This document shows positions 3,380 to 64,000 of a stretch of 64,000 nt of DNA, one piece after another. Origin of the DNA: Octopus bimaculoides (Eukaryota); assembly GCF_001194135.2 (NCBI RefSeq), contig NC_068984.1, forward strand, positions 87,314,051 through 87,378,050, given 5' to 3'. The position numbers and the translations under genes are program-made. Position 1 is the stretch's first letter. Every line of letters begins with the position of its first letter. The notes below the pieces were generated by a model. That model was not told the origin of the DNA. It ran no database searches and was given only the letters and a program-made list of their open reading frames with translations.

Positions 3380-3775
<396 letters not shown>

Positions 3776-4324: not shown

Positions 4325-4440
4325 TATGGTGTAGTAAGAAGCTTGCTTCCCAACCACATGGTTCTGGGTTCAGTCCAACTGCATGACACCTTGAGCAAGT
4401 GACTTCTACTGTAGCCTCAAGCCAACCAAAACCTTGTGAA
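4325..4440 (+). mobile_element. SINE family A, 5' fragment
   Basis: GCTTGCTTCCCAACCACATGGTTCTGGGTTCAGTCC head shared with 2588-2945. Confidence 0.7.
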
Positions 4441-5059: not shown

Positions 5060-5362
5060 TGATGATGAGGTTCCTGTCTATCTGATCAGTGGAACTGTCT
5101 GCTCATAAAATTAACGCGTAAGTGGCTGAGTACTCCACAGACATGCATACCATAGTTCTCAGGGAGATTCATCCTCACACAGAATGTGATAAGGCTGGCC
5201 CTTTGAGTTACAGTTACAACTCATTTTTGCCAGCTGAGTGGACTGCAGCAAAGTGAAGTAGAGTACCTTGCTTAAGAACACAGCGTGCCACCAGGAATCA
5301 TACTCATGACTTTATGATTGTGGGCTGAATACCCCTAACCACTGAGCCACACACCTTCACTC
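5060..5362 (-). mobile_element. tRNA-headed CORE-like SINE (family E; may correspond to octopus OR2)
   Basis: Minus-strand tRNA-like head near 5360, CORE-like middle (reverse complement of ACTCATTTTTGCCAGCTGAGTGGACTG), and a 3' tail shared with the SINE at 12184-12562. Confidence 0.7.
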
Positions 5363-5869
5363 TCTTAACCATAGAGAAAAGGAGTGAAGCGATAGAGACA
5401 GAAAAAGGAAAGCCTCAGTCATTTAAAATGACAATTAGACTGAAATACGATCGATCTTTTCTAGCTTCTTTACTTTTAACAATGAAGAAGAGGGAAAGAC
5501 ATTTAGTAATGAATAGAGGTAACTTTTACAGGTGTTTACATTTTTATTCTGGGAGTTCTAGAATGATCGAGTGTTAGTTCACTCTTCTTTCTCCCACCCT
5601 TGGTACTTATTCGCCTTCTTTCAAAGTTCTTCATGTCTTTTAGTTGGTGGTGGGGGGGAAGACCATGTTTTTTCTCAGGCACGTTTAATGTCTTCTCTAC
5701 AAACAACAAACAAGACTCTGCTTCCCTTCTTTTCTTTTTATACAAAAACTAATGCGAATTTCAAACGGGGTACAGGTATGAGAAGAGCTCAGAAAAATGG
5801 GTAATACCCCCCCAAAAATGGGTGGGAGAGAAAAGTTGCCAACAGGTGGCTACACGAAATTCAACTCTA

Positions 5870-5992
5870 GAGTTGTTTCTACTATAGCCTCGTGTTTGAC
5901 CCCACCACCACCATTGCTTAAGACACTTACCCAAGGTACCATGCAGTGGGACTGAACCTGGAAAGCAAGCTTTTTACCACACAGCCATGCCT
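5870..5992 (-). mobile_element. SINE family A, 5' fragment
   Basis: Reverse complement of the family A head. Confidence 0.6.
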
Positions 5993-14599: not shown

Positions 14600-14770
14600 G
14601 CAGCCATGTTGGGGCACAACCTTGAAGAATTTTAGCTGAACAAATTAATCCCAGTATTTATTTTAAAGCCTGATACTTATTCTATTGGGTTCTTTTGCTG
14701 AACTGCTAAGTTATAGGGATGTAAACATACTAACACTGGTTGTCAACCAGTGGTGGGGGACAAACGCATG
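14600..14770 (-). mobile_element. SINE family A, 3' fragment
   Basis: Reverse complement of the family A tail. Confidence 0.65.
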
Positions 14771-14996: not shown

Positions 14997-16019
14997 GGCA
15001 TTAACTGTGTATTAATACCTCACGCTATCGAGGGACTAAATAAGTAAAAAAACTCCCAAAAATAAGTAACATTTACCGAAAGCGAGGGANNNNNNNNNNN
15101 NNNNNNNNNNNNNNNNNNNNNNNNNNNNNNNNNNNNNNNNNNNNNNNNNNNNNNNNNNNNNNNNNNNNNNNNNNNNNNNNNNNNNNNNNNNNNNNNNNNN
15201 NNNNNNNNNNNNNNNNNNNNNNNNNNNNNNNNNNNNNNNNNNNNNNNNNNNNNNNNNNNNNNNNNNNNNNNNNNNNNNNNNNNNNNNNNNNNNNNNNNNN
15301 NNNNNNNNNNNNNNNNNNNNNNNNNNNNNNNNNNNNNNNNNNNNNNNNNNNNNNNNNNNNNNNNNNNNNNNNNNNNNNNNNNNNNNNNNNNNNNNNNNNN
15401 NNNNNNNNNNNNNNNNNNNNNNNNNNNNNNNNNNNNNNNNNNNNNNNNNNNNNNNNNNNNNNNNNNNNNNNNNNNNNNNNNNNNNNNNNNNNNNNNNNNN
15501 NNNNNNNNNNNNNNNNNNNNNNNNNNNNNNNNNNNNNNNNNNNNNNNNNNNNNNNNNNNNNNNNNNNNNNNNNNNNNNNNNNNNNNNNNNNNNNNNNNNN
15601 NNNNNNNNNNNNNNNNNNNNNNNNNNNNNNNNNNNNNNNNNNNNNNGTTGTTCATAATAAACTTTATTTTACATTTCTTGCCCACAAGAGATTATATCCA
15701 ATCTTTAGCATACTGCTGTGTCTTCTCAAATCACAATCACAGGAAAAGTTGTTGATAATTCTTATCAACAAACACAAAGCTGATAAATACACACAGGTGT
15801 TGCAAATTAAGTTTAATTACCAATAAACATCAGCATGGGTAACACTTTGCTCAACTGACAGAGGAAGGTGACTGATCAAACTGATTATGAAAATAATATT
15901 CTTTCCACCTATTCTTGTCGGAACCTTTGATATGGAGTACCGAAATTTTAATCCCTTTCACACTTAGAAAATGTCAAGCAAACATAAAAATTTGTCATTA
16001 GCATTATTGACAGTATGGG

Positions 16020-16810: not shown

Positions 16811-17019
16811 ACAAAGCCATTATTTTTTCTGTAAAACCTATTCTGACATTAAATGAGTCAATTTCCAGTATGAATGATTACATTTTGTACGTCTATTTTC
16901 AAGAAAAAGGATTTCTGGAAATGATCTACTCATGTAATTTACACACCCGCTAAAGTTTATTTTTATTTTTGCAAAAAAAGTGTTTAAATTACATAGGTTT
17001 TTACGATATATATATATAT

Positions 17020-17180
17020 ATGACAAACTTCTTTCAGTTTCCATTGACCAAATCCACCTATAAGGCTTTGGTTGGTCCAAGGATATAGTAGAAAACACTT
17101 ACTCAAGGTGCCATACAGTGGGACTGAACCTGGAATCATGTGGTTGGTAAGCAAACTTCTTTCCACAGAGCCATGCCGGC
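17020..17180 (-). mobile_element. SINE family A, 5' half
   Basis: Reverse complement of the family A head. Confidence 0.7.
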
Positions 17181-23684: not shown

Positions 23685-24030
23685 TTACCTTTTACTTGTT
23701 TTAGTCATTTGGCTGCAACCATTCTGGAGCACCGCATTGAAGTTGACTCCTGAACTTATTTTTCTTAAGTTTAGTAATTATTCTATCAGTCTCTTTTGTC
23801 AAACCACTAAATTATGGGGACATAAACACACCAGCACTGGTTGTTAAGTGATGGTGGGGGACAAACACAGGCACAAAGATATACACATAGATATATACAT
23901 ATATATATATATATATACAACAGGTTTCTTACAGTTTCTTTCTACCAAATTCATTTACAAGGCCTTGGTCGGCCAAAGACAACAGAACACACTTGCCAAA
24001 GGTACTACACAGTTGGATTGGACCCAGAAC
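23685..24030 (-). mobile_element. SINE family A
   Basis: Reverse complement of the family A tail, microsatellite and part of the head. Confidence 0.7.
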
Positions 24031-24069
24031 AATGTGCAAACATCTCTTTTATCTTTAAATTTTTACTTG

Positions 24070-24335
24070 TTTCAGTCACATGACTGTGACCATGTTAGGG
24101 CACCTCTTTGAGGAATTTTAATCGAAATAATCAATTCCAGTACTTATTGTCTTTTTTAAAACCTGTTTATTCTATCAGGCTCTTTTGCTGAACTGCTAGA
24201 CTATGGGGACATAAACACACCTATCTACCCAATTCACTCACAAGGCTTTAGTCGGCCCAAAGTGCCATGCAGTGGGTGTGAGCATGGAACCATGTGGTTG
24301 GGAGGCAAACATCTTACCACACAACCACGCCTGTG
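24070..24335 (-). mobile_element. SINE family A, internally deleted
   Basis: Reverse complement of tail and head segments. Confidence 0.65.
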
Positions 24336-25327: not shown

Positions 25328-25688
25328 TTGTTTCAGTCATTTGAATGTGGCCTTGCTGGAGCACTACCTTGAAGGGTTCTAGTCAAACAAATTGACCCCA
25401 GAGCTTTTTTTTTTTAAAGCCAAGTACTTATTCTATTGTTCTCTTTTGCCAAAGTGCTAATTTATGGGGATGTAAACATACCAACACCAGTTGTGAAGTG
25501 GTGATAGCGAGGATAAATAGTCTCACACACACACGACAGGCTTTTTTCAGTTTCCATCTACCAAATCCACTCACAAGGCTTTGGCTGGCCCAAGACTAAA
25601 GACACAGGTCCAAGGTGCCACACAATGAGACTGAACCTAGAACCATGTGGTTGGGAAGCAAGCTTCTTACCACACAGCCATGCCTGCC
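25328..25688 (-). mobile_element. SINE family A, full length
   Basis: Reverse complement of 2588-2945 over head, middle and tail. Confidence 0.8.
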
Positions 25689-26113: not shown

Positions 26114-26652
26114 TTAAATTTCAGTTTCTTTCAAGCCAGATCAACGAACTACATTAAGCATCTCTCTCTCTCTTTTTTTTTTTTTGTTAATTTATTTATT
26201 TACCAACAAATAGCAGTTAACAATATAATCATATTCATTTATAACCAAGGCAAAAAAAAAATAAGAAAAGCTAATTNNNNNNNNNNNNNNNNNNNNNNNN
26301 NNNNNNNNNNNNNNNNNNNNNNNNNNNNNNNNNNNNNNNNNNNNNNNNNNNNNNNNNNNNNNNNNNNNNNNNNNNNNNNNNNNNNNNNNNNNNNNNNNNN
26401 NNNNNNNNNNNNNNNNNNNNNNNNNNNNNNNNNNNNNNNNNNNNNNNNNNNNNNNNNNNNNNNNNNNNNNNNNNNNNNNNNNNNNNNNNNNNNNNNNNNN
26501 NNNNNNNNNNNNNNNNNNNNNNNNNNNNNNNNNNNNNNNNNNNNNNNNNNNNNNNNNNNNNNNNNNNNNNNNNNNNNNNNNNNNNNNNNNNNNNNNNNNN
26601 NNNNNNNNNNNNNNNNNNNNNNNNNNNNNNNNNNNNNNNNNNNNNNNNNNNN

Positions 26653-27556: not shown

Positions 27557-27589
27557 TATATATGTGCGTGTGTGTATTTATATATATAT

Positions 27590-27760
27590 GACAGGCTTCT
27601 TTTATTTTCCACCTACCAAATCCACTTGCAAAGCTTTGGTCATCCAAAGGTTATAGTAGAAAACACTTGCCTAAGGTGCCTCACAAAGTACCATGCAGTG
27701 GGCCTGAAACCTGAACCTTGTGGTTGAAAAGTAAGCTTTTAACCACACAGCCATGCCTAT
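27590..27760 (-). mobile_element. SINE family A, 5' half
   Basis: Reverse complement of the head. Confidence 0.65.
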
Positions 27761-31241: not shown

Positions 31242-32019
31242 GTATAAACGAATGAAGTTATCCAATTCCATTCACATCAAGGATACATCATAGGAAGTGC
31301 CTCCCCCTCCCCACTTCAGATTCCAATGTTTTAAACAANNNNNNNNNNNNNNNNNNNNNNNNNNNNNNNNNNNNNNNNNNNNNNNNNNNNNNNNNNNNNN
31401 NNNNNNNNNNNNNNNNNNNNNNNNNNNNNNNNNNNNNNNNNNNNNNNNNNNNNNNNNNNNNNNNNNNNNNNNNNNNNNNNNNNNNNNNNNNNNNNNNNNN
31501 NNNNNNNNNNNNNNNNNNNNNNNNNNNNNNNNNNNNNNNNNNNNNNNNNNNNNNNNNNNNNNNNNNNNNNNNNNNNNNNNNNNNNNNNNNNNNNNNNNNN
31601 NNNNNNNNNNNNNNNNNNNNNNNNNNNNNNNNNNNNNNNNNNNNNNNNNNNNNNNNNNNNNNNNNNNNNNNNNNNNNNNNNNNNNNNNNNNNNNNNNNNN
31701 NNNNNNNNNNNNNNNNNNNNNNNNNNNNNNNNNNNNNNNNNNNNNNNNNNNNNNNNNNNNNNNNNNNNNNNNNNNNNNNNNNNNNNNNNNNNNNNNNNNN
31801 NNNNNNNNNNNNNNNNNNNNNNNNNNNNNNNNNNNNNNNNNNNNNNNNNNNNNNNNNNNNNNNNNNNNNNNNNNNNNNNNNNNNNNNNNNNNNNNNNNNN
31901 NNNNNNNNNNNNNNNNNNNNNNNNNNNNNTGAAATTGCAAATTATTTAAAATATAAAAATATAATTTTCAACAGAGAGAATTTATCAAAATAGAAAACAA
32001 ATGAAGTTTGAAGTTTAAA

Positions 32020-32575: not shown

Positions 32576-33417
32576 GAATATTCCGGATGTTTTTTAACTT
32601 GTCCGCTGATTTGCGCATGCGTAAAAGATTTTCTAGCCCGCGCATGAAATGAGCCTAGAGGTGGTCTCTCCATATGCTAGAAGTAACAGTCAAATTTCTG
32701 ACGGTATGAACAGGCAACACACCCTTTTTGATTTACTTTTATTCTTTGTTTTTTTCGTTTTCTGATTCCAATGTTTTCGACAACGGAGATTCTGATTTTG
32801 CCATAGAAAAAAAAAAAAAATTAAAAGAAAAAACAACCTTTAAAAAATTTCCGCCACTTGACTCATAGTTTGTCAACCACGAAAAGAGGAAAGGCGAAAT
32901 TAACCTCGATAGGATGAAAAGACCCCTAACTAAATACCACAAGACACTTCAACTACCACTCTACCAATTCTACTAATATTACACCAACAGGAACCAGTAA
33001 TGTCTATCCATATAACCTCTAACGTGGAAGTAGAATAATTTACTAAATACTGTGTATAAAAAGCTCACCAACTTTTTTATCACATTATATTCCAATATAA
33101 TCGTAATCTACATCATCTNNNNNNNNNNNNNNNNNNNNNNNNNNNNNNNNNNNNNNNNNNNNNNNNNNNNNNNNNNNNNNNNNNNNNNNNNNNNNNNNNN
33201 NNNNNNNNNNNNNNNNNNNNNNNNNNNNNNNNNNNNNNNNNNNNNNNNNNNNNNNNNNNNNNNNNNNNNNNNNNNNNNNNNNNNNNNNNNNNNNNNNNNN
33301 NNNNNNNNNNNNNNNNNNNNNNNNNNNNNNNNNNNNNNNNNNNNNNNNNNNNNNNNNNNNNNNNNNNNNNNNNNNNNNNNNNNNNNNNNNNNNNNNNNNN
33401 NNNNNNNNNNNNNNNNN

Positions 33418-35215: not shown

Positions 35216-36305
35216 AGCATCAGCCAATTTAGCTATGTTCGAAAAATGTTCCGCTCAGAAGCCATTCTCTAAAAGCATTCTACTGTTACGCGTAAAACTG
35301 AGAAATTTACATCGATACCAATTAACCAGGAACTAAAATTAATTAGGGCAAAAATTTAGAAACTGTCATCAGAACCGAATTTCTTGGAGGAACCTAGCAT
35401 ACTGCTAGAGATGAATGATTCCGAAACAAAAACGCTATGGGATAGAGATCTTAATTCAGGTGAAACCTGAAATGTTGGACAGGATCAATAACCTATCAGA
35501 AATCTCGGGAGATCTGAAAGTGCAGGTAGTAGTGGAGAACAAATAGCTTAGATGCTGTAAATATGGAAATACCGATCTTCTCAAGACCTTCTTCCCTCAG
35601 CAATAACGGAAAGTGACAGTTGACAGAAAGCCTCCAACACTCCGGCAGTAGGGAAAAAACAGCAGCAACTACATCAGCAACACTAGTAACAACGCAAAAT
35701 TGCGGAAGCTGTGGTTGCTGCACTAGCGACAAAGATGGAAGCAACACTTATAATAGCAGCAACGACACCAACGGTTGAAACAACATTAACGAAAACAACA
35801 ATAAAAAATATCCCTCTCATGGGCCACGATATCGGCAACAGCAACAGAAAACCCCAAAACAACAACAAAAATATTAACATCAGAATAGATCACAAACCCC
35901 ACAAAGCATGCCCTCCATTCAAGCATACTGAGTAGCGAATGTCATGGCGAGGAGCTTAAATGGCAGAAAATGACTAATAGAAAGAAAACGAAAGAGAACT
36001 CACACCAGCAACAGAATTTAAGCGAACGGGAAACATACTTTCAAACAACGACACAGCAACACACTTATATTAACAACAAAACTAGTGTTATCACCACCAT
36101 CATTAACATCGTCATCACCACAATCGCAACAGATACCATCGTAAGCACAACCCATTCTACACCCAAACCAACAACTAGAACAACATCCTCAAAGGAACAC
36201 CATAAACGATACGGTCATAGACACAAGCAACAAAGGACTAATAGGCCACACACATCAACACACAAGCATTTACACATCACGACTTCACACCAACAAATAA
36301 CATAC

Positions 36306-38474
36306 TATAGGAAAGTGGGTTATACATCATTAGATGTACACCACTTTCCTATATAAAATTAAGAATATAACGGAACGCTGAACTCCAGACTATCAACTTA
36401 AACAACATTTATTCAGGTGGTAAATATATACATCTTTAGCTCTTGTTTGTTGTTATAGCTTCTGTGTGTATGAGCATGGTTGTTGGGACGTTGGTATGTA
36501 GATGTAAGCGAGCTGTCGAGCGTAAGTTCGAAAGATGGAGAGAGACAGCTAAACACNNNNNNNNNNNNNNNNNNNNNNNNNNNNNNNNNNNNNNNNNNNN
36601 NNNNNNNNNNNNNNNNNNNNNNNNNNNNNNNNNNNNNNNNNNNNNNNNNNNNNNNNNNNNNNNNNNNNNNNNNNNNNNNNNNNNNNNNNNNNNNNNNNNN
36701 NNNNNNNNNNNNNNNNNNNNNNNNNNNNNNNNNNNNNNNNNNNNNNNNNNNNNNNNNNNNNNNNNNNNNNNNNNNNNNNNNNNNNNNNNNNNNNNNNNNN
36801 NNNNNNNNNNNNNNNNNNNNNNNNNNNNNNNNNNNNNNNNNNNNNNNNNNNNNNNNNNNNNNNNNNNNNNNNNNNNNNNNNNNNNNNNNNNNNNNNNNNN
36901 NNNNNNNNNNNNNNNNNNNNNNNNNNNNNNNNNNNNNNNNNNNNNNNNNNNNNNNNNNNNNNNNNNNNNNNNNNNNNNNNNNNNNNNNNNNNNNNNNNNN
37001 NNNNNNNNNNNNNNNNNNNNNAAATTCCACAAGGAGATAGAATGTCTGTACTCAGGAAGTCGTGGTCAGTTGTGACCGGTTACCTGGTACGGAATATTCA
37101 ATTCGGCTAGCTCTTACTGTTGTGCGTGAGTGGATAAATTCCACTCCACAGTGAAGATAAAACCGAGTGTGTTGATCTGGTGTGTCCCTGGTGGTGGGGT
37201 TGTTGGCGCACGACATTGTGGTAGACAGTACATTGATGGTGAAGACGTCAGCACAGGAACTGTAATATAGCTGTGTTCTGTATGTGTGGTGGTAATGATG
37301 TCTTGTTGAAACTTGGCGACGTCGGGGGGAATGCTTGTAGTTGGTAGTAGTAGTTGTTGTCGTCGCGGTGGTAATCTTGGTTGAACGAAGCTGGTGGCGA
37401 AAAGGCTGCTCGTTGATGATGGTTGAAGAGGTGCGCTTTCACAGACGGTCGACAGACAAATCTCTGTACGACCATTAGCGAAAACCTCGAAGAAAATTTT
37501 CTTAACCCAAGATGAAAGAACGACCGTGCGAACTCAAAAAGGAGAAATGGTGACGAATGGAAAAACAGAGGACTCCTTTTATTTAAACGTGTCACACGTC
37601 GAATACAAAAAATAATTTTTCAATGATGATATACAAATATGTTATACTACGATAACATAGATTTCGTAAATACCAGTAATGAGACGATAGAAAAAAAAAA
37701 CAACCGTATGAAATGAATAACAAGAGATATTTAGTGTGGTATAAAAGATGTATGTGTATGTGAGAGTGTGAATGCGACATATAAGAACATAATAAAAGAC
37801 AGGCCGTCTATATGTATGTGAGATATCACAGCAGATAGAAAGTCAGTACACGTGAGAGTTTTATACCAAGTTCTTGAGTACACAATTGGAAAGTCGTGTT
37901 GACTATGGTTGGAGATGTTGGTGGTCATCGTTGCTTGGTAGTTCAGTCTCAATGGCCGCATTTGTTCTTTAGTCGGGGTTCACCAGTTATAGGTTGGTAG
38001 TCCAGAATCCATGCTGCGTTTTTCTTCGTCGGGGTCACCACTTTATAGGAAAGTGGGTTATTGTAGCTCAGCGGGCTGCGTGTTCGAATCACGTCGGGGG
38101 TCACCACTTTATATAGGAAAGTAGGTTATATATCATTAGATGTATACCTGACTTTCCTATATAAAATTAGAAATTAAACGGAACGCTGAACTCCAGACTA
38201 TCAACTTAAACAACATTTATTCAGGTGGTAAATATATACATCTTTAGCTCTTGTTTGTTGTTATAGCTTCTGTGTGTATGAGCATGGTTGTTGGGACGTT
38301 GGTATGTAGATGTAAGCGAGCTGTCGAGCCTAAGTTCGAAAGATGGAGAGAGACAGCTAAAAACGTCCATGCTCAATCGCTGGCCAGCAAGAAAGCGACA
38401 GAATAGAAGCGAGAACGCTTGGTTGTTGAATTCCACGCATGCGTGAGACTACGCATGCGCACAGCGTTACTACA
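36306..38474 (-). mobile_element. Non-autonomous LTR element (TRIM-like), copy 1, tRNA-Trp PBS
   Basis: Direct repeats at 36306-(gap) and 38112-38474; TSD ATAC at 36302-36305 and 38475-38478. The minus-strand 5' LTR starts TGTAGTAAC and is followed by TGGTGACCCCCGACG (PBS). No recognisable gag/pol in the sequenced interior. Confidence 0.88.
37972..38106 (-). other. Tandem tRNA-Trp primer-binding-site cassettes (3 units)
   Basis: GTCGGGG(T)TCACCA ends at 37985, 38040 and 38106. The last extends to GGCTGCGTGTTCGAATCACGTCGGGGGTCACCA (38074-38106). Confidence 0.85.
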
Positions 38475-41036
38475 ATACCAACGCACCCACAAAATCCAGA
38501 AACAACACAAAAAACTTGCAACAAACCAAAACCAAAATTCTCCGACAGAATGGGTGATCTCCAGGGATTGTAAACAAGAACATCTACAAAACTTTAATAG
38601 TAGAAACACCCACAATTAGTCGGAAAGACAGAATACTAGCCTCTCCATAAGAATGAAATAAGTGAGCCTGTCTCGCTTTTCGCCTTCTGTCTAACATGAT
38701 CTTACTTAGAATAGGCAGTGTGAAAGCATGTAATCTTGGGTTGCCTTGGAAACATGGTCAATTGCTCAACGACCTCACGTGACTAAATATATATGTGATA
38801 ATTATCAAAGAAACGAGAATTTTCGAGCGACGCACCTTCACGACCATTTTCGGAAGTTACGAGCTGTGGGCATCTCTAAGTTGGCTGAGATTAAGAGGCA
38901 GAGTTGTGTCATTTCGGAAAGGTCTGGCCCTTCGATAGAGATCATCCTGGACCCAGAAGGTAAGTTGGTAGTAATGAACGTAACTAACAGCGAAAACCAT
39001 TTCTTCAAACTAGTGACCGTCTACGCCCCAACAAGAGCGGGGCGGTTTGATTTCTTTTGTTGTTTAATGGCCTTTCTAGGAACATCCTGCACTTTAGGGT
39101 TAGTGGGCGATCGGAACATCATCTTCGATGTGTGCAGATTGAAGAGATAGTAATTGCAAAAACCTTACAAACCTAATCAAATGCTTCCAACTGTCTGACA
39201 GGTAACGGCTGGCTTTCACGAAAATTCAAATGTGGACATAGATAAACCGCATCGGGCCATGCAAGTCGTATCTAGATAGAATATTCTGTTGGTCAGTAGA
39301 TAAGGATAGCAGAGATTGTCTACAATTTAAAATCGTCGACTAATCAGATCACAAATTTGTGGTCTATACGGTGGACCTAGATATGTTTAGTATACTAGGA
39401 TCCTGGAAGCTGAATGCGTCGCTCTCGGCGCATCAGATTTACAAGGACGTATCAATTGATTAATTGAAGGGGAAACAGTCAACGATAAATGCTGGTTCTC
39501 CTTGAAAAAAAGCGATTAGAGTATAACCAACAAGGTTATTTAAGAAAGTAGCAATGAAGAAAACTATTTTAAAAGGAGACCTAGCCAGAAACATAGAAGG
39601 GGCACTTAGGAAAGGCATCTCAACTGATGTGCTTGCAGTGAGATTGGCACTCGACCCATTCTTGAAGGCAAAGCACACGAAGGTTGCGTTGTGAGAGCTA
39701 AGGCGCGTGCTCTAAGACTGGAAAAAAACGAAAGCTGTTCGATGGGCCTGAGCGACAGAGGCACAACGTGACAAATTCACAATTTGGTCTTTGATGGACA
39801 TGATAAGCACGAGTTACCTAATCAAATATGCGCGACTTTTCAGTGACACTTTGTTCGACTGTTTGGGATAAATGGCGGGTCGCATTGCAGAATGGACTCC
39901 AGTGCATAGCACGATGGCCTATTGCGGCTCTCGGCAATGAAGATGGAGTTGATATGAAGAGTTGATAACAACCGTGAAAATACGGAAAGCAATGGTTAGC
40001 TTTATGGGCAGCAAATCACAAAATTTGGATGGTCTACTCTATAACCTTTATTTTAATATGCCATTGGCAGACAGTACAACAGAAGAATCCCCAGTTCTGT
40101 AAGTTAAGAAGCGGTTGTGCTGCCGAAAAAGATCTGAATAAAAGGGACTACATTGATAATTAACGGCTAAATGCATATTTCAAAATTTTGTCTAAGGTAT
40201 TAACGAAGAGGTTGACGTTTGTCGTCGGTGGTCTGACTGGTGAAGTACAAACAAGCACCATCCCAAAGAGAGAAACACCACGTCTTGTGATACATCATAG
40301 AGAGGTGGCAATCAAGGCCCCTACCCTGGTATGGGCGGGAACTTGATCAACTTAGATCAATCGAAAGACTTCGATCGGGGTGACCACAAGTATTTGGTGA
40401 CTGTTCTCACAGCAACCGCTTTCGGTCACGTTGGCTTTTCCTCTTTCCGGCGTTTTTGGTTCCAGACTTTTTAAGGTCTAGCCGCTGACCACAAGACACA
40501 GTCAGTTCCAGCGACAACGCCAGACACCACCACCACAGCAGCTACATTGAGACTCACCAACTTCGTCCAACAACATTACGGCAACCTCCCTCTTCGTCGC
40601 CAACATCATGTTCTTCTTAACATCGTCAACATCATCTCTCTACGTACACAGCTCAGCAAGCAATTTACCCAGGTTCCAACACTTCACTGTTCATGAATTA
40701 CTTCACCATGGATCAACAACGAATATACAACCTGCAAGAATACCTGTATCAAGTGACCCAGGCAGCAGCATCACAGCCACGACTTCATGTACCTGTAACC
40801 GACTCAGCATCATAGCCGCAACTTCTTGATACAGTATTTCAACTACTGTGTACGACTAACTACAAACTGGTATTATTCATCTTCTATGAACTTACTTCTC
40901 ACTTCAATGGCTATAGACTCTTTCACTGTCATCATCTTCATTGCCATCCTTATATGTTTTTAACACGCGCATACATCTACGCTTACACACACACATACAC
41001 TTTGTTCTCATGACGGCCTGTCTATTATTCTGTATA

Positions 41037-42475: not shown

Positions 42476-42917
42476 GTTTTAGGCTTCGGTTTAGTGTTAT
42501 GCTTTAGCGTTTAGAATTATAGTTTAGGGTTAAAGTTTGGGTTAGAGTTAAGGTTAGGGTTTAGGGTATAAGACTATGTTAGAGTTATGGTTGGTGTTTA
42601 GGGTTTAGGGTTATTGTTAAAGTTTAGATTCTAGGTTTAGGGTTAAAGTAAGTGTTTAGGATTAGAGATTAGGGTTGGGGTTAAGATTACGATTAGAGTT
42701 AGGGTTTAATATTACGATTAGGGTTTAGAGTTAGGGTTAGGGTTTAGCACTCGAGTCGAGGTTAGGTTTAGGGTCTAGTTTTAGGGTTTAGGTTAGGGTT
42801 TAGTGTTTGGGGTTAGGTTTAGTGTTAGGGTTAAGGGTGAGGGTTTATGGTTAAGGTTAATGTTAGGGTTTGGAGTTAAAGTTTGAGTTAGGGTTTAGGG
42901 TTAGGGTTAATGTTATG
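42476..42917 (+). repeat. Degenerate telomere-like (TTAGGG/TTTAGGG) interstitial array
   Basis: About 440 bp of TTAGGG, TTTAGGG and variants, with few uninterrupted runs. Confidence 0.9.
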
Positions 42918-53185: not shown

Positions 53186-54015
53186 TCTATCCAGGGCTTA
53201 ACAATTATTTCTGAGACTAAAACAATAATTGAATGTATGACATTTACCTAATTTGCCAAATTTAAGATTCATTATTTTTCTAAGTACTACTATGCTCTTA
53301 TGCGCATAGAATTCATCCCTGTAACTAAAAACGTTTCTCATTCCTGTTCGATGTCATCACAACATCTGTTAGAAATAAAAGCTGAATCTCCCTCGAATTA
53401 CATCCTACCGTTTTAAAAAACAAAAGAGAAAGAAATATATCAAAGAATTCAAATATTTATTGAGAAATGTTCTCCCTTAAAACTCCTGTTTTCAGTTAGT
53501 TATACTGTGTGTGTGAACATCTCTTAGGCGAGTGAGATAAGCCTCTATAGCATCAAACACACAATGACCATTGATGCACATACTGAAGAACATACCAATA
53601 ATTATTTATTAAATAATGTCTGGGAATCCGTTACCTTTATAGGCTTCTTTTGATTGATCTATGAAATCTATTTCATATTTACTTATTGCTATGAAATAAG
53701 TAAGTATAAAATAGATTCTCCCCTTTTCAAACGAAAGTGTATAGACCAGTCAAAAAGATACATTTGCGAATGTAGCCCTCGAAATACAAAAGTTTAAGAT
53801 GGTCACAAATGGAATGCCTTCGATCATAGGTCTGGTTTTTGTATAAACAATAATTATTTTCACCGTGATATCACGAAACTATTCACTCTCATATTCAATT
53901 CACAAGGAAGACTCAAGCCATTACACTCAACTAACACTCTGCTCACGTTACCTTATACAGCGGAGGCATAACGAGTTCAACAATAATAAACAAGTCTAGG
54001 CGCATCATTTTAACC

Positions 54016-55721
54016 TTTAGTAGAAAGTGGGTTATACATCTTTAGATTGTATACCTGACTTCCTACTATAAAATTAAAGAATATAACAGAACGCTGAACT
54101 CCAGACTATCAACTTAAACAACACTTTATTTAGGTGGTAAATATATAAATCTTTAGTTCTTTAGTGGTTACAGCTTCTGTGTGTATGAGCATAGTTGTTG
54201 GGACGTTGTTCTGTAGTTGTGAGCGAGCTGTCGAGTGTAAGTCCGAAAGATGTAGAGAGACAGCTTAAACACACGTCCATGCTCAATCGCTGGCCAGCGA
54301 GAAAGAGAATGAATTGAGCGGGAAACGCTTGCTTGTTTAATTCCACGCATGCGTAAGACTACGCATGCGCATGCGTTACTACAGAGCTCCCTTGCCAGTG
54401 CGGAAACGCACGATAAATGAAATCTGTTAGAACGCCTGAGGCAGGATGGCCACTGAAAAACCACCCACAAGATGTGGTACAAACACACACAAAGAAAATT
54501 CAAAGAAATTAAATGTACACTTGTGAAATACATGCATGCNNNNNNNNNNNNNNNNNNNNNNNNNNNNNNNNNNNNNNNNNNNNNNNNNNNNNNNNNNNNN
54601 NNNNNNNNNNNNNNNNNNNNNNNNNNNNNNNNNNNNNNNNNNNNNNNNNNNNNNNNNNNNNNNNNNNNNNNNNNNNNNNNNNNNNNNNNNNNNNNNNNNN
54701 NNNNNNNNNNNNNNNNNNNNNNNNNNNNNNNNNNNNNNNNNNNNNNNNNNNNNNNNNNNNNNNNNNNNNNNNNNNNNNNNNNNNNNNNNNNNNNNNNNNN
54801 NNNNNNNNNNNNNNNNNNNNNNNNNNNNNNNNNNNNNNNNNNNNNNNNNNNNNNNNNNNNNNNNNNNNNNNNNNNNNNNNNNNNNNNNNNNNNNNNNNNN
54901 NNNNNNNNNNNNNNNNNNNNNNNNNNNNNNNNNNNNNNNNNNNNNNNNNNNNNNNNNNNNNNNNNNNNNNNNNNNNNNNNNNNNNNNNNNNNNTAGCGAA
55001 AACCTCGAAGAAAAATTTTCTTAACCCAAGATGAAAGAACGACCGTGCGAAATGAATAACAAGAGTTATTGTGTGGCATAAAATATGTATGTATATGTGA
55101 GAGTGTGAAATGCGACATATAAAAACATAAAAAACAGGCCGTAAATCCTGTCTGTTTTTCGTGAGTGGAAAAAAATCCACTCTAACAGAGGCGAGAATAA
55201 AAACCGCTCTTGTTGAGTCGTCTTGACTATGGTTGGAGATGTTGGTAATCCGTAGTTCAGTCTCCATGGCCGTATTTGTTCTTTGGTCGGGTTCACCAGT
55301 TATAAGTTGGTAGTCCAGAGTCCATGCTGCGTTTTTTCTTCGTCGGGGGTCACCACTTTAGCAGAAAGTGGGTTATACATCTTTAGATTGTATACATGAC
55401 TTTCTACTATAAAATTAAAGAATACAACGGAACGCTGAACTCCAGACTATCAACTCAAACACTTTATTTAGGTGGTAAATATATAAATCTTTAGTTCTTT
55501 AGTTGTTACAGCTTCTGTGTGTATGAGCATAGTTGTTGGGACGTTGTTCTGTAGTTGTGAGCGAGCTGTCGAGTGTAAGTCCGAAAGATGTAGAGAGACA
55601 GCTTAAACACACGTCCATGCTCAATCGCTGGCCAGCGAGAAAGAGAATGAATTGAGCGGGAAACGCTTGCTTGTTTAATTCCACGCAAGCGTAAGACTAC
55701 GCATGCGCAGGCGTTACTACA
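54016..55721 (-). mobile_element. Non-autonomous LTR element (TRIM-like), copy 2, tRNA-Trp PBS
   Basis: LTRs at 54016-54383 and 55357-55721 (about 10 differences by eye); TSD AACC at 54012-54015 and 55722-55725. PBS at 55341-55355, second degenerate PBS at 55286-55298, and a short purine tract (GGCAAGGGAG, minus) before the 3' LTR. Confidence 0.92.
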
Positions 55722-55725
55722 AACC

Positions 55726-57759: not shown

Positions 57760-59540
57760 TACTTAACTTAGATAACTTAACATAGATTGGTTTCGGCCAT
57801 TATTGGCCCAGGCCATGACTAACTCAATAGCACCAACTGGCACGGACCAGTTAAGCAAAAAAGTTGTTGTTGGCTGAAACGTATCCAGGTGTAGGTGATT
57901 TATTCGGTATTTCCTAGAGGAATTTGTCCTGGTACCGTTTGAAAGTTGTAGCGTCTTTTTCTACTTTAATTTCTTTCGGGATAGCATTGAAAAGAACAAG
58001 ACCATTTGCAGTGAAGGAATTGTGCCGCAATGTTTTTATGTGATGTGGTCTCGACCTTTGTAGGGGATGCATTGCACGGGGACCTAGACTTTGGTGAATT
58101 GTAAACTTAATATCGATATCATTTGGATAAAATTGGTGGAATATTTTCCACTTGGTGCAAATAACGTATCGTTCACAGCGGCGTTGCAGAGAATAGAGTT
58201 TCAGTTGTTTAAGCTGAGCTTAATAATCAAGTCCCGTCATGACATTTACTTTTTTAGTGATTGATCTTTGTGGTGCTTCGATCCTCATTATGTCTTGTTT
58301 TTTGTAGGGAGACCACAATGGGCGGCAGTATTCGAGGTGGGGGTCTAGCGAATGTGGAGAAGACAAGGATGATGGTTTCATGATCCCTATATTGTAAAGT
58401 TCTGAGGATCCATGAGCACATTCTGCAGGTAACATCGACTTTTTTGTTGATGTGCACACTCCAGTTAAGGTTGCTGTCGACAGTTACACCTAAGTCTCTG
58501 GTATTATCCAACGGTTCAAATAGGTCTCCCGGCGGTAGTGTATATGGTTGTTTGAGTGTGCCCTCTTTTCCAAAGTGGATGACCTCACATTTTTCTTCGG
58601 TCAGCTGCATATTGTTTTTGTGTGCCCACTGGGTTAGTGCGCATAAGTCCCTTAATGACTTTCTGAAGCTTAGAGTCATCTGCCAATATTTTAATGGTGC
58701 TACGTTCAATGGAATCTGCAATGTTATTGATATAGACAATAAAAAGAAGTGGACCCAGCACAGTACTTTGCGGGACTCCGCTGAAAACTTTTGCTGGTCT
58801 TGAGTGAATGCTATCAACCACAACATGCTGGGTCCTGTTTGTTAGGGAATACTTAATCCATTGAAGTAACTTTCCACCGACTCCAGTGTTGGATAGGTTC
58901 CTTAACAGTATATTGTGGTCGACTCTGTCAAAGGCCTTGCTGAAATCAAGGTATATGACATCTGTGTTCGAGCCCTCACTTAGTGCATTTAAGATATCAT
59001 CAAAGTGGTGGAGGAGCTGTGTTAGACAGTTCCTCCCACCATGAAAGTCATGCTGGTTGAAAATTAGATGATTTTGCTCTAGGAAGGGTGTTATTCTTGA
59101 TCTCAACACTCTCATAAATATTTTGATGATACGTGAGGTTAGTGAGAATGGACAGTAGTTTACTGGGAGCGATTTATTGCCTTTTTAAAGATAGGAACAA
59201 CTGACTGGGAGAGGAGGTTTTGAGAGATAAAACCGGCATCCAGTGATTTCCGCCAGAGATTTGCAAGAGGAGCTGCAAGTTGCTGTCTGCATACCTTCAG
59301 CACTCTAGCAGGGAACCTGTCAGCACCCACTGGTGAATCAGATTTGATTTCTTTTATTGCTGCTAGGATGTCAGTAGCGTCGAAGGTTATGTCGGAAAGG
59401 ACATGCTGAGGAGTCAAAGAAGCAAAGCTGCTTGAGTCAACTGAATCAGGGTCACTGAAAAAAAGAGCAGAATTGACTTTGCAGCATCTCAGCCATGTCT
59501 TTGGCAAAACTGTGAAGGAAGCCGTTTCTGTCAACCAAAT
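57760..59540 (-). mobile_element. CR1/L2-type LINE ORF2 (reverse transcriptase) relic
   Basis: DVIYLDFSKAFDRVDH, SGVPQSTVLGPLLFIVYIN, LADDSK, RDLGV, RP.LEYC..WSP; frameshifted. Confidence 0.95.
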
Positions 59541-60433
59541 TTTATCTTTTTTTTTTTTCGAAGACTAAAGAAAATAAATTTGAAGGGAAATATTACTTTC
59601 AAATTTTAGCACAAGATAAATNNNNNNNNNNNNNNNNNNNNNNNNNNNNNNNNNNNNNNNNNNNNNNNNNNNNNNNNNNNNNNNNNNNNNNNNNNNNNNN
59701 NNNNNNNNNNNNNNNNNNNNNNNNNNNNNNNNNNNNNNNNNNNNNNNNNNNNNNNNNNNNNNNNNNNNNNNNNNNNNNNNNNNNNNNNNNNNNNNNNNNN
59801 NNNNNNNNNNNNNNNNNNNNNNNNNNNNNNNNNNNNNNNNNNNNNNNNNNNNNNNNNNNNNNNNNNNNNNNNNNNNNNNNNNNNNNNNNNNNNNNNNNNN
59901 NNNNNNNNNNNNNNNNNNNNNNNNNNNNNNNNNNNNNNNNNNNNNNNNNNNNNNNNNNNNNNNNNNNNNNNNNNNNNNNNNNNNNNNNNNNNNNNNNNNN
60001 NNNNNNNNNNNNNNNNNNNNNNNNNNNNNNNNNNNNNNNNNNNNNNNNNNNNNNNNNNNNNNNNNNNNNNNNNNNNNNNNNNNNNNNNNNNNNNNNNNNN
60101 NNNNNNNNNNNNNNNNNNNNNNNNNNNNNNNNNNNNNNNNNNNNNNNNNNNNNNNNNNNNNNNNNNNNNNNNNNNNNNNNNNNNNNNNNNNNNNNNNNNN
60201 NNNNNNNNNNNNNNNNNNNNNNNNNNNNNNNNNNNNNNNNNNNNNNNNNNNNNNNNNNNNNNNNNNNNNNNNNNNNNNNNNNNNNNNNNNNNNNNNNNNN
60301 NNNNNNNNNNNNNNNNNNNNNNNNNNNNNNNNNNNNNNNNNNNNNNNNNNNNNNNNNNNNNNNNNNNNNNNNNNNNNNNNNNNNNNNNNNNNNNNNNNNN
60401 NNNNNNNNNNNNNNNNNNNNNNNNNNNNNNNNC

Positions 60434-63170: not shown

Positions 63171-63668
63171 TTTTATATCCATATTCCTTAACTAACATGA
63201 GTGGTAGGGACATTTTCATGTTTCAGTTGTTTACTCCAATGTAAGCTCTATGTAAGCAGAGATATGATGAAAAAGCGTTCAAAGCAGGGCTAACTAATCT
63301 TTATTTTGAGTAGTGTGCCTAGGTCTGTGTTATGCGATGTTCCTCTTTTAAAGACTGGTAAAGTATGATTTGGGGTGATTTAACCTACTATTTCTAGTAG
63401 TCTGATTGACTAGGTTAAGGGCTCTTAATTTGAGTGTTAACAGGGATATACTTCTCCTAGAGATAAACAATGTTGAATATCATCAGTTGGCAGCGACTCA
63501 ACTTCGGAATAATATTGTTTGCATTGGAAACGAAGAAACTTCTTGGTTTACTAGAAGCAGCCTTTAAATTTCTTTCTCTCAAAGTGCACTCTACCATCTC
63601 ATACAAGGAGAAGCCATGTTAAATAGTGTTGTCCTAAAAAGACAAAATGATCATAGCTGGAATGCCTT

Positions 63669-63995
63669 TGTAGTAACGCCTGCGCATGCGTAGTCTTACG
63701 CATGCGTAGAATTAATAAAGCAAGCGTTTCCCGCTCAATTCATTCTCTTTCACGCTGGCCAGCGATTGAGCATGGACGTGTGTTTAAAGCTGTCTCTACA
63801 TCTTTCGGTCTTATACTCGACAGCTCGTTATTCTCACCTCTAAAGATGTATAACTAAAAGATTTGTATGTTTATCACCTAAATAAATGTTGTTTGAGTTG
63901 TTTAGTCTGGAGTTCAGCGTTCCGTCTATTTCTTCAATTTTATAGTAGAAAGTCAGGTATACAATCTAAAGATGTATAACCCACTTTCTACTAAA
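63669..63995 (+). mobile_element. Solo LTR of the tRNA-Trp TRIM-like family
   Basis: TGTAGTAAC...CTACTAAA, reverse complement of the LTRs at 54016-55721; TSD CCTT at 63665-63668 and 63996-63999; AATAAA at about 63880. Confidence 0.9.
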
Positions 63996-64000
63996 CCTTT

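Follow-up and report, generated by a model that had tools for sequence, protein, structure and literature searches.

Stacked tRNA-Trp primer-binding sites in the leader of a non-autonomous octopus LTR retrotransposon as probable scars of reverse transcription

Results

The element family and its features

The window, by which we mean the whole 64-kb stretch of Octopus bimaculoides DNA analysed here, contains an LTR retrotransposon family with LTRs of about 365 bp, represented by two full copies on the minus strand and one solo LTR. Stacked between the 5' LTR and the internal region of each full copy are units that end in the 3' end of tRNA-Trp, three in copy 1 and two in copy 2. The features, with their strand and the evidence for each, are as follows.

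36302-36305, no strand: target-site duplication ATAC, copy 1 left (same 4-mer at 38475-38478)
36306-36556, minus: copy 1 3' LTR, partial, entering the gap 36557-37021 (96.8% identity to 38108-38360)
37022-37930, minus: copy 1 internal region, non-coding (short ORFs; no further PBS-like unit)
37931-37985, minus: copy 1 unit 3, innermost; core 37972-37985 with one inserted T (paralogous to unit 2)
37986-38040, minus: copy 1 unit 2; perfect 13-nt core 38028-38040 (core, and paralogy with unit 3)
38041-38061, minus: re-copied U5 end of 21 nt, opening the 66-nt block; 3' half of the U5 hairpin (18/18 to the 3' LTR end)
38062-38106, minus: unit 1, CCA-ended antisense tRNA-Trp 3' copy of 42-45 nt; current LTR-proximal PBS (36/41 identity)
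38108-38474, minus: copy 1 5' LTR, after spacer base 38107; U5-terminal hairpin 38108-38165 (LTR pairing)
38475-38478, no strand: target-site duplication ATAC, copy 1 right (matches left ATAC)
54012-54015, no strand: target-site duplication AACC, copy 2 left (matches right AACC)
54016-54383, minus: copy 2 3' LTR (97.5% identity to 55357-55721)
54384-55239, minus: copy 2 internal region, with assembly gap 54540-54993 inside
55240-55298, minus: copy 2 unit 3; its core at 55286-55298 lacks one base (core match)
55299-55355, minus: copy 2 unit 2, the LTR-proximal PBS; core 55342-55355 with an extra G (core match)
55357-55721, minus: copy 2 5' LTR, after spacer base 55356; U5 hairpin 55359-55409 (LTR pairing)
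55722-55725, no strand: target-site duplication AACC, copy 2 right (matches left AACC)
63665-63999, plus: solo LTR 63669-63995 with flanking CCTT duplication; U5 hairpin 63943-63993 (about 94% identity to the copy 2 LTRs)

The surroundings are a repeat-rich eukaryotic region, and the window holds 11 assembly gaps, one of them inside each element.

We identify these insertions as LTR retrotransposons because the LTRs are paired, 4-bp target-site duplications flank all three insertions (ATAC, AACC and CCTT), a solo LTR is present, and in both copies the tRNA-Trp 3' end forms a primer-binding site (PBS) one base from the 5' LTR. The LTRs of the two copies belong to subfamilies that differ by about 10%. 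Read in the sense direction, the LTRs start with TG and end in AAA (copy 2 and the solo LTR, which is copy 3) or TA (copy 1), so that the TG...CA pattern is not found; non-canonical termini occur in LTR retrotransposons, and a missing TG...CA is not disqualifying. In copy 2 a weak purine run lies on the sense strand at 54384-54396, 3 nt from the 3' LTR, and the site of the polypurine tract in copy 1 falls within the gap.

Both copies contain short ORFs only, with no Pfam match and no homologue; the 115-aa internal ORF of copy 1 has no Pfam match, and a homologue search with it was empty at E <= 0.001. The internal gaps (454-465 nt) are too small for a pol gene if the gap sizes are roughly right, and the whole element measures about 1.7-2.2 kb including gaps, with LTRs of 365-368 bp. 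Having neither gag nor pol, the element falls among the non-autonomous LTR retrotransposons by the class criterion of TRIM and LARD elements. No autonomous partner was found within the window, and an alignment of the LTR ORF, seeking further copies of the family, returned no candidates. A Ty3/gypsy-type partner elsewhere presumably copies the family, with tRNA-Trp as the primer; in their 4-bp duplication and their PBS for tRNA-Trp the copies agree, by analogy alone, with animal Gypsy-linked TRIMs (PMC10886601).

tRNA-Trp 3' ends in the leader

A search for the 13-mer at 38028-38040 (plus strand, tRNA sense) on both strands of the window, allowing at most one edit, returned matches at 37972-37985, 38027-38040, 38093-38106, 55286-55298 and 55342-55355 only, five where shuffling leads one to expect a mean of 0.04 (200 shuffles). 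The three tRNA-Trp 3' ends of copy 1 and the two of copy 2, as a preliminary description of this DNA had placed them, are thereby confirmed. One further motif match with two edits (40373-40386) has no LTR context and was set aside as chance. The assignment to tRNA-Trp rests on a tool result: of the 30 environmental contigs tested, 27 have a 22-mer from the LTR-proximal unit at the 3' end of a tRNA-Trp(CCA) gene called by ARAGORN, the reference being environmental eukaryotic contigs and not the host's own gene.

Neither ARAGORN, applied to the window, nor Rfam, run on the two stacks at permissive E-values, found a tRNA, because the tRNA pieces are too partial for a tRNA model. A cluster of tRNA genes or pseudogenes was considered and rejected. 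Tandem Repeats Finder reported no array, and a search of the internal regions for a fourth, older unit gave nothing above shuffles.

The 66-nt block and unit 1

Copy 1 equals copy 2 with an exact insertion of 66 nt. The inner two units of copy 1, with their spacers, have homologous counterparts in copy 2 (93.7% identity), in line with the earlier claim of shared inner units with homologous spacers, which leaves two units in copy 2 against three in copy 1. The block begins with a 21-nt copy of the LTR end (38041-38061), identical to the 3' LTR end at 18/18 positions and to the 5' LTR end at 20/21 with a 2-nt indel, and the score of this match was reached in 0/5000 shuffles; the outer end of the copy 1 3' LTR has 2 nt fewer than the inner end of the 5' LTR. 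There follow 12 nt (38062-38073) that weakly continue an ungapped alignment to the tRNA, with 36/41 identity over 42 nt overall, and then a perfect 32-nt tRNA-Trp 3' part with one extra G (38074-38106). The composition first given for this block, 20 nt of LTR end, 13 unexplained nt and a tRNA part, holds for its two ends, the LTR end being 21 nt long, but the unexplained portion turns out to be 12 nt of weak tRNA likeness.

Upstream of the core, the resemblance of unit 1 to tRNA-Trp was matched in 0/1000 shuffles. The tRNA sequence of unit 1, with its intact T-arm and post-transcriptional CCA, is present nowhere else in the element. Because the 42-nt tRNA-Trp match ends in a non-encoded CCA, unit 1 is best read as a copy of a mature tRNA, and its T-arm did not come from unit 2, since the T-arm region of unit 2 is equally degraded in both copies. 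The presence of the 21-nt U5 end argues that the block was joined by a polymerase returning to U5 rather than by free insertion of a tRNA copy. About 7 of the distal 12 positions of unit 1 match tRNA-Trp, and the similarity of these 12 nt to units 2 and 3 is about equal, so that an older unit could be the source of part of unit 1; a 9-nt motif lying 43-47 nt from each CCA end is common to all three units. The new junction shows no visible microhomology. The tRNA-sense sequence sits on the antisense strand of the element, as predicted by the established scheme of reverse transcription, in which the primer is attached to minus-strand DNA and copied into the plus strand.

Units 2 and 3

Units 2 and 3 are paralogous to each other (0/2000 shuffles), whereas unit 1 and unit 2 show no significant similarity outside the core (198/2000 shuffles). 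Likeness to tRNA-Trp beyond the 13-nt core is at p about 0.05 for unit 2 and p about 0.36 for unit 3, and in unit 3 of copy 1 the recognisable tRNA match covers only about 26 nt, with gaps. Since the two units are paralogous and carry no significant tRNA likeness beyond the core, they look like a single duplication of PBS and leader made by reverse transcriptase, and not like two further primer captures.

These results bear on several earlier claims. The suggestion that the unit ending at 38040 retains an older, long tRNA copy was not supported, the likeness of unit 2 outside its core not being significant. A gradient of decay is present in so far as the LTR-proximal unit is the most intact, but it separates two levels and not three, with unit 1 on one side and units 2 and 3 together on the other. 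That each tRNA end abuts a piece of the LTR terminus is true of 38041-38061, but the LTR-end-like piece beside the innermost unit, which precedes the core of unit 2 of copy 1 on the plus strand, is a 6-7-nt match that is not significant (p about 0.29).

A conserved hairpin at the end of U5

The U5 terminus of copy 1 (38108-38165) is predicted to fold into a hairpin of -25.4 kcal/mol (z = -7.9), with three compensatory pair changes between the subfamilies. The new junction of the 66-nt block falls inside this strongly predicted structure, which is plausible as a pause or transfer site.

Comparable loci in other contigs

CCA-ended tRNA-Trp copies of 29-50 nt were found at nine environmental loci, in a survey that favoured long copies, the search pattern requiring the T-arm. 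Two of these loci (L033 and L094) encode reverse transcriptase and integrase, and another (L039) a protease of gag type, all oriented as expected. When the environmental loci were compared with the element by BLAST, homology was confined to the tRNA part, and we therefore treat them as analogues rather than relatives.

L033 is a Ty3/gypsy element (protease, RT/RNase H and integrase), unrelated to the family in the window. After its LTR come, in this order, a decayed tRNA-Trp copy, a piece with weak likeness to an LTR end (p = 0.047), a tRNA-Trp copy that is perfect over 32 nt, and a PBS of 14 nt; the LTR-proximal block is missing from its relatives L094 and L116. From these sequences, the stacked layout apparently arose independently again in the Ty3/gypsy lineage of L033. 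Perfect tRNA-Trp copies of exactly 31-32 nt occur in L019, L033 and L094. Viral contigs scanned for tandem cores and CCA-ended long copies gave 0 matches, and the tandem-core scan of bacterial and archaeal genomes gave five bacterial contigs, mostly Actinomycetota, which are most likely chance or coding repeats.

Discussion

Proposed origin of the stack

We consider it somewhat probable that the stack consists of replication scars left where U5 meets the PBS in a tRNA-Trp-primed, non-autonomous family, rather than being an adaptive array. An older event, common to both copies, would have been the duplication by reverse transcriptase of a block of about 55 nt, comprising a short U5 end, a 13-14-nt PBS and the first 34-40 nt of the leader, which would have produced units 3 and 2. 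The 66-nt block, found in copy 1 only, may have a different source. From the primer, plus-strand strong-stop DNA normally copies no more than the 3' 18 nt; in this case it would have read 42-45 nt into tRNA-Trp, and synthesis would have resumed 21 nt upstream of the PBS, in the 3' arm of the U5 hairpin, which is conserved. Two routes could lead there: re-annealing of the over-long plus strand in U5, or a switch by a minus strand that had already advanced 21 nt into U5 to the end of that over-long plus strand. The resulting order would be LTR, long tRNA copy, 21-nt U5 end and old PBS, and the new copy adjacent to the LTR would then act as PBS, with the inner copies as relics.

We infer that only plus-strand synthesis past the 18-nt stop, together with a misplaced strand transfer, yields such a block; the order of the transfer steps, the strand that switched and the choice between gain and loss are likewise read back from the observed anatomy. 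The mechanism proposed earlier, re-annealing of over-extended strong-stop DNA at U5, accords with that anatomy (T-arm, CCA and re-copied U5 end), its order of transfer being the inferred part. Additions would be polarised, because new material can enter only at the U5/PBS junction. The polarised record of successive priming events that had been proposed is partly supported: there remains the probable LTR-proximal scar, the inner units look like one duplication, and the decay has two levels in two copies.

Alternative explanations

Two full copies were examined, both with assembly gaps, and the 66-nt difference fits a gain in copy 1 or a direct-repeat deletion in copy 2 alike. The three-unit form might be ancestral, copy 2 having lost exactly one repeat period by recombination between direct repeats of 35 nt, and we regard this as less probable than the reading above, though to be taken seriously. 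Such repeats bound the 66-nt difference, deletion between direct repeats by reverse transcriptase is frequent, and an RT-mediated deletion between the two would turn a three-unit parent into copy 2. The extra-G (5-G) variant is common to the proximal PBS of both copies, so that the single proximal core of copy 2 carries the variant of copy 1 unit 1, whereas the inner unit of copy 1 is a true 4-G, a pattern that fits a simple recent gain in copy 1 poorly; G-run length is, however, a homopolymer character and prone to slippage. L033 shows the same presence and absence pattern against L094 and L116, which is neutral as to direction. A loss would still need an earlier read-through event to create unit 1, and the 18/18 match of the 21-nt U5 piece to the LTR type of copy 1, despite a subfamily difference of about 10%, is consistent with the piece having arisen fairly recently in the lineage of copy 1.

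It is unlikely that all units are template-switch duplications of the U5 end, PBS and leader made during minus-strand strong-stop synthesis, with the proximal 32 nt re-copied from the primer in each cycle and no separate long read-through captured. This would account for the clear paralogy of units 2 and 3 and for the 9-nt motif in all three units, it predicts the 5-G proximal and 4-G inner pattern, and the exact 31-32-nt perfect copies in three environmental loci suggest a regular long stop point. The proximal PBS of copy 2, however, matches the tRNA over just 14-15 nt, which means that the family has no 32-nt zone of re-copying, and the T-arm region of unit 2 is too diverged a template for a 32-nt primer copy to be extended on it; nor are units 1 and 2 significantly alike outside the core. 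Selection for the extra PBS copies, either to give primer tRNA auxiliary sites to bind or to serve 3' tRNA fragments as targets or decoys, seems less likely again. Such fragments do target PBS sequences (PMC7472051), and in both copies units 2 and 3 have an almost perfect 13-nt core beside sequence that is barely tRNA-like, but the same pattern is expected if the ancestral PBS was just 13-14 nt long at the time of duplication. Moreover, the leader is conserved between the copies at a level (93.7%) little above that of the LTRs (about 90%), and copy 2 manages with one unit fewer.

The assembly is gap-rich, and the extra unit might in principle be an artefact or a DNA event after integration, such as a chimeric join or an inserted fragment of a tRNA pseudogene. 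We consider this very improbable, as 30 nt of the block are unique in the window and hence not a collapsed or duplicated read, the block ends exactly at the CCA beside the LTR and starts with an exact copy of the U5 end, and L033, an independent contig of a different organism, has this layout too. Assembly duplication in particular was rejected on the uniqueness of the block.

Implications

If replication scars are the correct reading, read-through of the primer tRNA, deemed a dead end, appears to have been rescued and inherited here, and apparently again in an unrelated Ty3/gypsy lineage. Were this general, the leaders of LTR elements would form a natural archive of strand-transfer errors, record the stop positions of reverse transcriptase on modified tRNA, and offer a route for the evolution of PBS length, PBS number and possibly primer usage. 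A bolder version holds that tRNA-Trp-primed LTR elements repeatedly and heritably write U5-tagged primer copies into the leader, which would thereby become a fossil record, newest first, of aberrant priming and strand transfer, that the copy lengths (29-32, 37-39 and 42-50 nt) report stops of reverse transcriptase in vivo, and that the inner 13-nt cores are kept as auxiliary sites for tRNA or tRNA fragments; we find this unlikely as a whole. In practice, stacks can mislead LTR-annotation tools that expect one PBS and can pass for tRNA pseudogenes.

Comparison with known systems

The family resembles TRIMs and other small LTR elements, such as bivalve biv-TRIM (PMC6934838) and animal Helenus (PMC10886601), in its pair of terminal direct repeats, its lack of gag and pol, its tRNA-complementary PBS by the 5' repeat and its solo repeats, and its 4-bp target duplications are as in animal Helenus (PMC10886601). 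Kojima connects Helenus with Gypsy partners, of which some use tRNA-Trp as primer (PMC10886601). TRIMs are defined by a total length below about 1 kb and terminal repeats of 100-250 bp (PMC6934838), and unlike a strict TRIM the element here exceeds both limits. In Helenus the LTR itself contains a tRNA-like sequence in sense orientation, presumed to be a pol III promoter (PMC10886601), whereas the tRNA pieces here are antisense, 3'-partial and CCA-ended, and lie between the LTR and the internal region; a Helenus-type element with a tRNA in its LTR was rejected, as ARAGORN and Rfam show no tRNA in the window or the LTRs. Stacked PBSs are undescribed for biv-TRIM or Helenus, and searches of the literature for PBSs that are naturally in tandem, duplicated or extended yielded no precedent.

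The likeness to CRISPR arrays is formal, in that units are added at one end by a fixed 'leader'; there are no foreign spacers, acquisition machinery or repeat-spacer regularity, and polarity is set by the primer attachment site. A CRISPR-like array was rejected, Tandem Repeats Finder having reported none and the units being self- or primer-derived. Engineered retroviral vectors with two PBSs in one leader were reportedly made by Voronin and Pathak in 2004, either PBS being able to start reverse transcription; those are laboratory constructs, whereas the stack here is natural and has U5-end tags and a long tRNA copy. Ohshima, Okada and colleagues are said to have put forward, in the 1990s, a strong-stop-DNA model for the origin of tRNA-derived SINEs in squid and octopus. 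As in that model, each cassette, read on the plus strand, runs from a 3' part of the tRNA into the complement of U5, which is the 5' portion of minus-strand strong-stop DNA, but unlike tRNA-derived SINEs the cassettes are embedded in the leader of the parent element and are not dispersed retroposons.

Like gypsy/Ty3 (PMC1635307), the family has more than one tRNA-complementary site per genome; the gypsy/Ty3 sites lie at opposite ends of the genome, correspond to different parts of one tRNA and form a bridge (PMC1635307), whereas the sites here are in tandem in the 5' leader and correspond to one 3' end. A parallel to the 66-nt block is HIV-1 and its primer tRNA-Lys3, for which read-through past m1A58 is documented and leaves DNA that is non-complementary after plus-strand transfer (PMC8599865). 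In both cases more than 18 nt of the primer are copied into plus-strand DNA, but the HIV-1 product is described as a dead end (PMC8599865), while in the octopus element it would have been rescued through a misplaced transfer into U5 and made heritable.

Structure of a small LTR retrotransposon family

Self-comparison of the window identified two LTR pairs and a lone LTR, with each of the three insertions (3/3) flanked by a perfect 4-bp duplication: ATAC for copy 1, AACC for copy 2 and CCTT for the solo LTR.

LTRs of the family
36306-36556, minus: copy 1 3' LTR, running into an assembly gap; 96.8% identical to the 5' LTR
38108-38474, minus: copy 1 5' LTR, paired with 36306-36556
54016-54383, minus: copy 2 3' LTR, 97.5% identical to the 5' LTR
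55357-55721, minus: copy 2 5' LTR, paired with 54016-54383
63669-63995, strand opposite to copies 1 and 2: solo LTR of the same family

The tRNA-sense sequence lies on the plus strand with its CCA one base from the right-hand LTR; therefore the element reads on the minus strand, the right-hand LTR is the 5' LTR and the tRNA-like units are primer-binding sites (PBS). Judged from its sequence, the element is a small non-autonomous LTR retrotransposon of ~1.7-2.2 kb including gaps, since the visible internal sequence has short ORFs only, in which searches found neither Pfam domains nor homologues. Copy 2 has a weak polypurine tract; the corresponding site of copy 1 falls in an assembly gap. The window has eleven such gaps (3524-3709, 15090-15646, 26277-26652, 31339-31929, 33119-33417, 36557-37021, 54540-54993, 59622-60432 and three short ones), two of them inside copies 1 and 2, making the element lengths approximate; many adjoin TA/TG microsatellites. 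A search for more family copies through translated ORFs yielded none, and the family comparison comprises the two full copies and the solo LTR. Against the family's other LTRs, the solo LTR shows an internal deletion of 40 nt, and with its duplications (63665-63999) it stops one base short of the window edge.

Identity of the primer

The 13-nt tRNA 3' end at 38028-38040 (plus strand), hereafter the core, is matched within one edit at the following positions and nowhere else on either strand of the window (shuffled-sequence expectation 0.04).

Cores in the window
37972-37985, plus: copy 1 locus, innermost unit (unit 3)
38027-38040, plus: copy 1 locus, unit 2
38093-38106, plus: copy 1 locus, LTR-proximal unit (unit 1)
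55286-55298, plus: second locus
55342-55355, plus: second locus

ARAGORN and Rfam found no tRNA gene in the window. When environmental metagenome contigs were scanned with a 22-mer of the LTR-proximal unit containing one degenerate position, 120 loci were recovered, and at 27 of the 30 given to ARAGORN the match was the 3' end of a tRNA-Trp(CCA) gene, so that the tRNA-Trp assignment made in the preliminary description is correct. All units in the window terminate in CCA; since this triplet is not encoded by eukaryotic tRNA genes, a mature tRNA was the template. In both copies the proximal PBS (38093-38106, 55342-55355) has a run of five G's, against four in the copy 1 inner unit (38028-38040) and in tRNA-Trp genes; pairing with the primer would leave the fifth G as a one-base bulge.

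An additional 66-nt unit in copy 1

In a sense-orientation alignment, copy 1 exceeds copy 2 by exactly 66 nt (38041-38106), as had been observed from the sequence alone, and the remaining leader is 93.7% identical.

Parts of the 66-nt unit
38041-38061: re-copied U5 end, 21 nt; 18/18 to the 3' LTR end, score reached by 0/5000 shuffles
38062-38073: 12-nt stretch extending the ungapped tRNA alignment, ~7 matches
38074-38106: tRNA-Trp 3' part, a perfect 32-nt match plus one extra G

The tRNA alignment of unit 1 amounts to 36/41 identity over 42 nt, and upstream of the core its score against tRNA-Trp is reached by none of 1000 shuffles. The 35-nt direct repeats (PBS core and U5 end) on either side of the block leave its phase ambiguous; the new join links the distal end of the tRNA copy to position -21 of U5. 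This distal end could derive in part from an older unit, because a 9-nt motif is common to all three units, 43-47 nt from their CCA ends.

Outside the cores, units 2 and 3 agree at 28 of 35 positions (0/2000 shuffles), and their simplest reading from sequence is a single ~55-nt duplication of a short PBS with its leader. Two further long primer copies were considered and rejected, the units being similar to each other and their tRNA likeness being marginal in unit 2 (p ~0.05, including the anticodon-loop hexamer noted previously) and absent in unit 3 (p ~0.36). The hint of an older long tRNA copy in unit 2 falls short of significance, and the LTR piece reported after unit 3 is a non-significant match of 6-7 nt (p ~0.29). 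A search for a fourth unit found none.

Origin of the additional unit

Under the usual reverse-transcription scheme, minus-strand DNA keeps the primer tRNA on its 5' end. Synthesis of plus-strand strong-stop DNA runs through U3-R-U5 and on into the primer, ending at m1A58 after the 3'-terminal 18 nt. To our knowledge, primer read-through is the sole route by which tRNA sequence enters an element, and only at the U5/PBS junction; unit 1 occupies this position. Read-through leaves DNA mismatched after plus-strand transfer (PMC8599865). We propose that plus-strand strong-stop DNA would have read past m1A58 into the primer tRNA-Trp and that synthesis would have restarted 21 nt upstream of the PBS, because the re-copied U5 end comes after unit 1. 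The preliminary description had the over-long plus strand re-anneal in U5; its read-through and return to U5 agree with the site of unit 1 and the re-copied U5 end, and the re-annealing itself is one of two equivalent versions, the other being that the minus strand, 21 nt into U5, would switch to the 3' end of the over-long plus strand. Either version would yield the identical product. This is the best available mechanism for the extra unit and is partly supported; the data do not establish the stack as an ordered record of several events.

Structure prediction gives every LTR a strong hairpin in the last ~55 nt of U5 (z = -7.9, -4.0, -5.9).

Predicted U5-terminal hairpins
38108-38165
55359-55409
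63943-63993
36306-36360
54018-54070

Its 3' arm abuts the PBS, and in the lower stem the copy 1 type and the copy 2/3 type are set apart by three compensatory pair changes that keep the pairing. The new tRNA/U5 junction falls within this hairpin, where a stable U5 stem could plausibly cause pausing or strand transfer.

With two copies compared, the 66-nt difference may reflect either acquisition of the block by copy 1 or its loss from copy 2 through deletion between the 35-nt repeats. The five G's shared by both proximal PBSs, against four in the copy 1 inner unit, favor deletion and are contrary to a recent simple gain, but a G-run is a slippage-prone homopolymer, which weakens this argument; the 21-nt piece, which matches the LTR type of copy 1 perfectly though the subfamilies differ by ~10%, argues against deletion.

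Recurrence in environmental contigs

CCA-ended partial tRNA-Trp copies, antisense and adjoining LTR-like ends, occur at 9 of the 120 loci (L019, L023, L033, L039, L058, L094, L103, L116, L119) in a scan whose pattern required the T-arm, which places shorter PBSs outside the sample. Their lengths (29, 29, 31, 32, 32, 37, 39, 49 and 50 nt) group at 29-32, 37-39 and 49-50 nt, possibly the positions at which reverse transcriptase stops on the tRNA. In the expected orientation, L033 and L094 have coding regions for protease, RT/RNase H and integrase, with the L033 pol region divided among three open frames; L039 encodes a gag-type protease. Between its LTRs (~582-1145 and 5205-5983), L033 has a leader that reads LTR, decayed 45-nt tRNA-Trp copy, ~20-nt LTR-end-like piece (p = 0.047), perfect 32-nt copy and 14-nt PBS. 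L094 and L116 have related leaders lacking the LTR-proximal block, with a truncated inner remnant only. Thus, as far as sequence comparison indicates, the stack layout and its LTR-proximal presence or absence recur in an unrelated lineage; the environmental loci showed no likeness to the window element beyond the tRNA part.

In L023 (1627-3339, minus), the long ORF downstream of the 50-nt copy has a NADAR domain and no gag/pol, and may be a captured host gene or part of a non-autonomous element. L002 (329-400) and L032 hold sequences resembling tRNA-Trp genes, with internal deletions or a 3' part only without CCA; uncalled by ARAGORN, they are probably tRNA pseudogenes.

Other features of the window

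42482-42914: degenerate TTAGGG-like (GGGTTA/GGTTTA) array of ~430 bp, an interstitial telomere-like repeat
58254-59534, minus: LINE-type RT remnant (Pfam RVT_1) in three adjacent or overlapping ORFs, hence with at least two frame interruptions, beside an 811-nt assembly gap; the named relative that matches best is from the octopod Argonauta hians (59% identity), suggestive of a cephalopod-like host
2602-2692, 4329-4419, 14657-14746, 17007-17179, 23758-24333, 25408-25686, 27575-27759: short dispersed SINE-like repeats of multiple families, 71-88% identical, presumably resembling cephalopod SINEs

Comparison with known systems

We found no account of tandem PBSs stacked in a natural element or of heritable primer read-through in the literature, which is weak evidence as subscription journals were mostly uncovered; the two-PBS retroviral vectors attributed to Voronin and Pathak (2004) are reportedly laboratory constructs. 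At ~1.7-2.2 kb, the window element is larger than a strict TRIM (PMC6934838). Animal TRIM-like elements have 4-bp duplications and Gypsy-type PBS regions, and some are tRNA-Trp-primed, but they carry a tRNA-like sequence within the LTR, in sense orientation, which the window element lacks (PMC10886601). Gypsy and Ty3 also have more than one PBS, but their two sites lie at opposite ends of the genome (PMC1635307).
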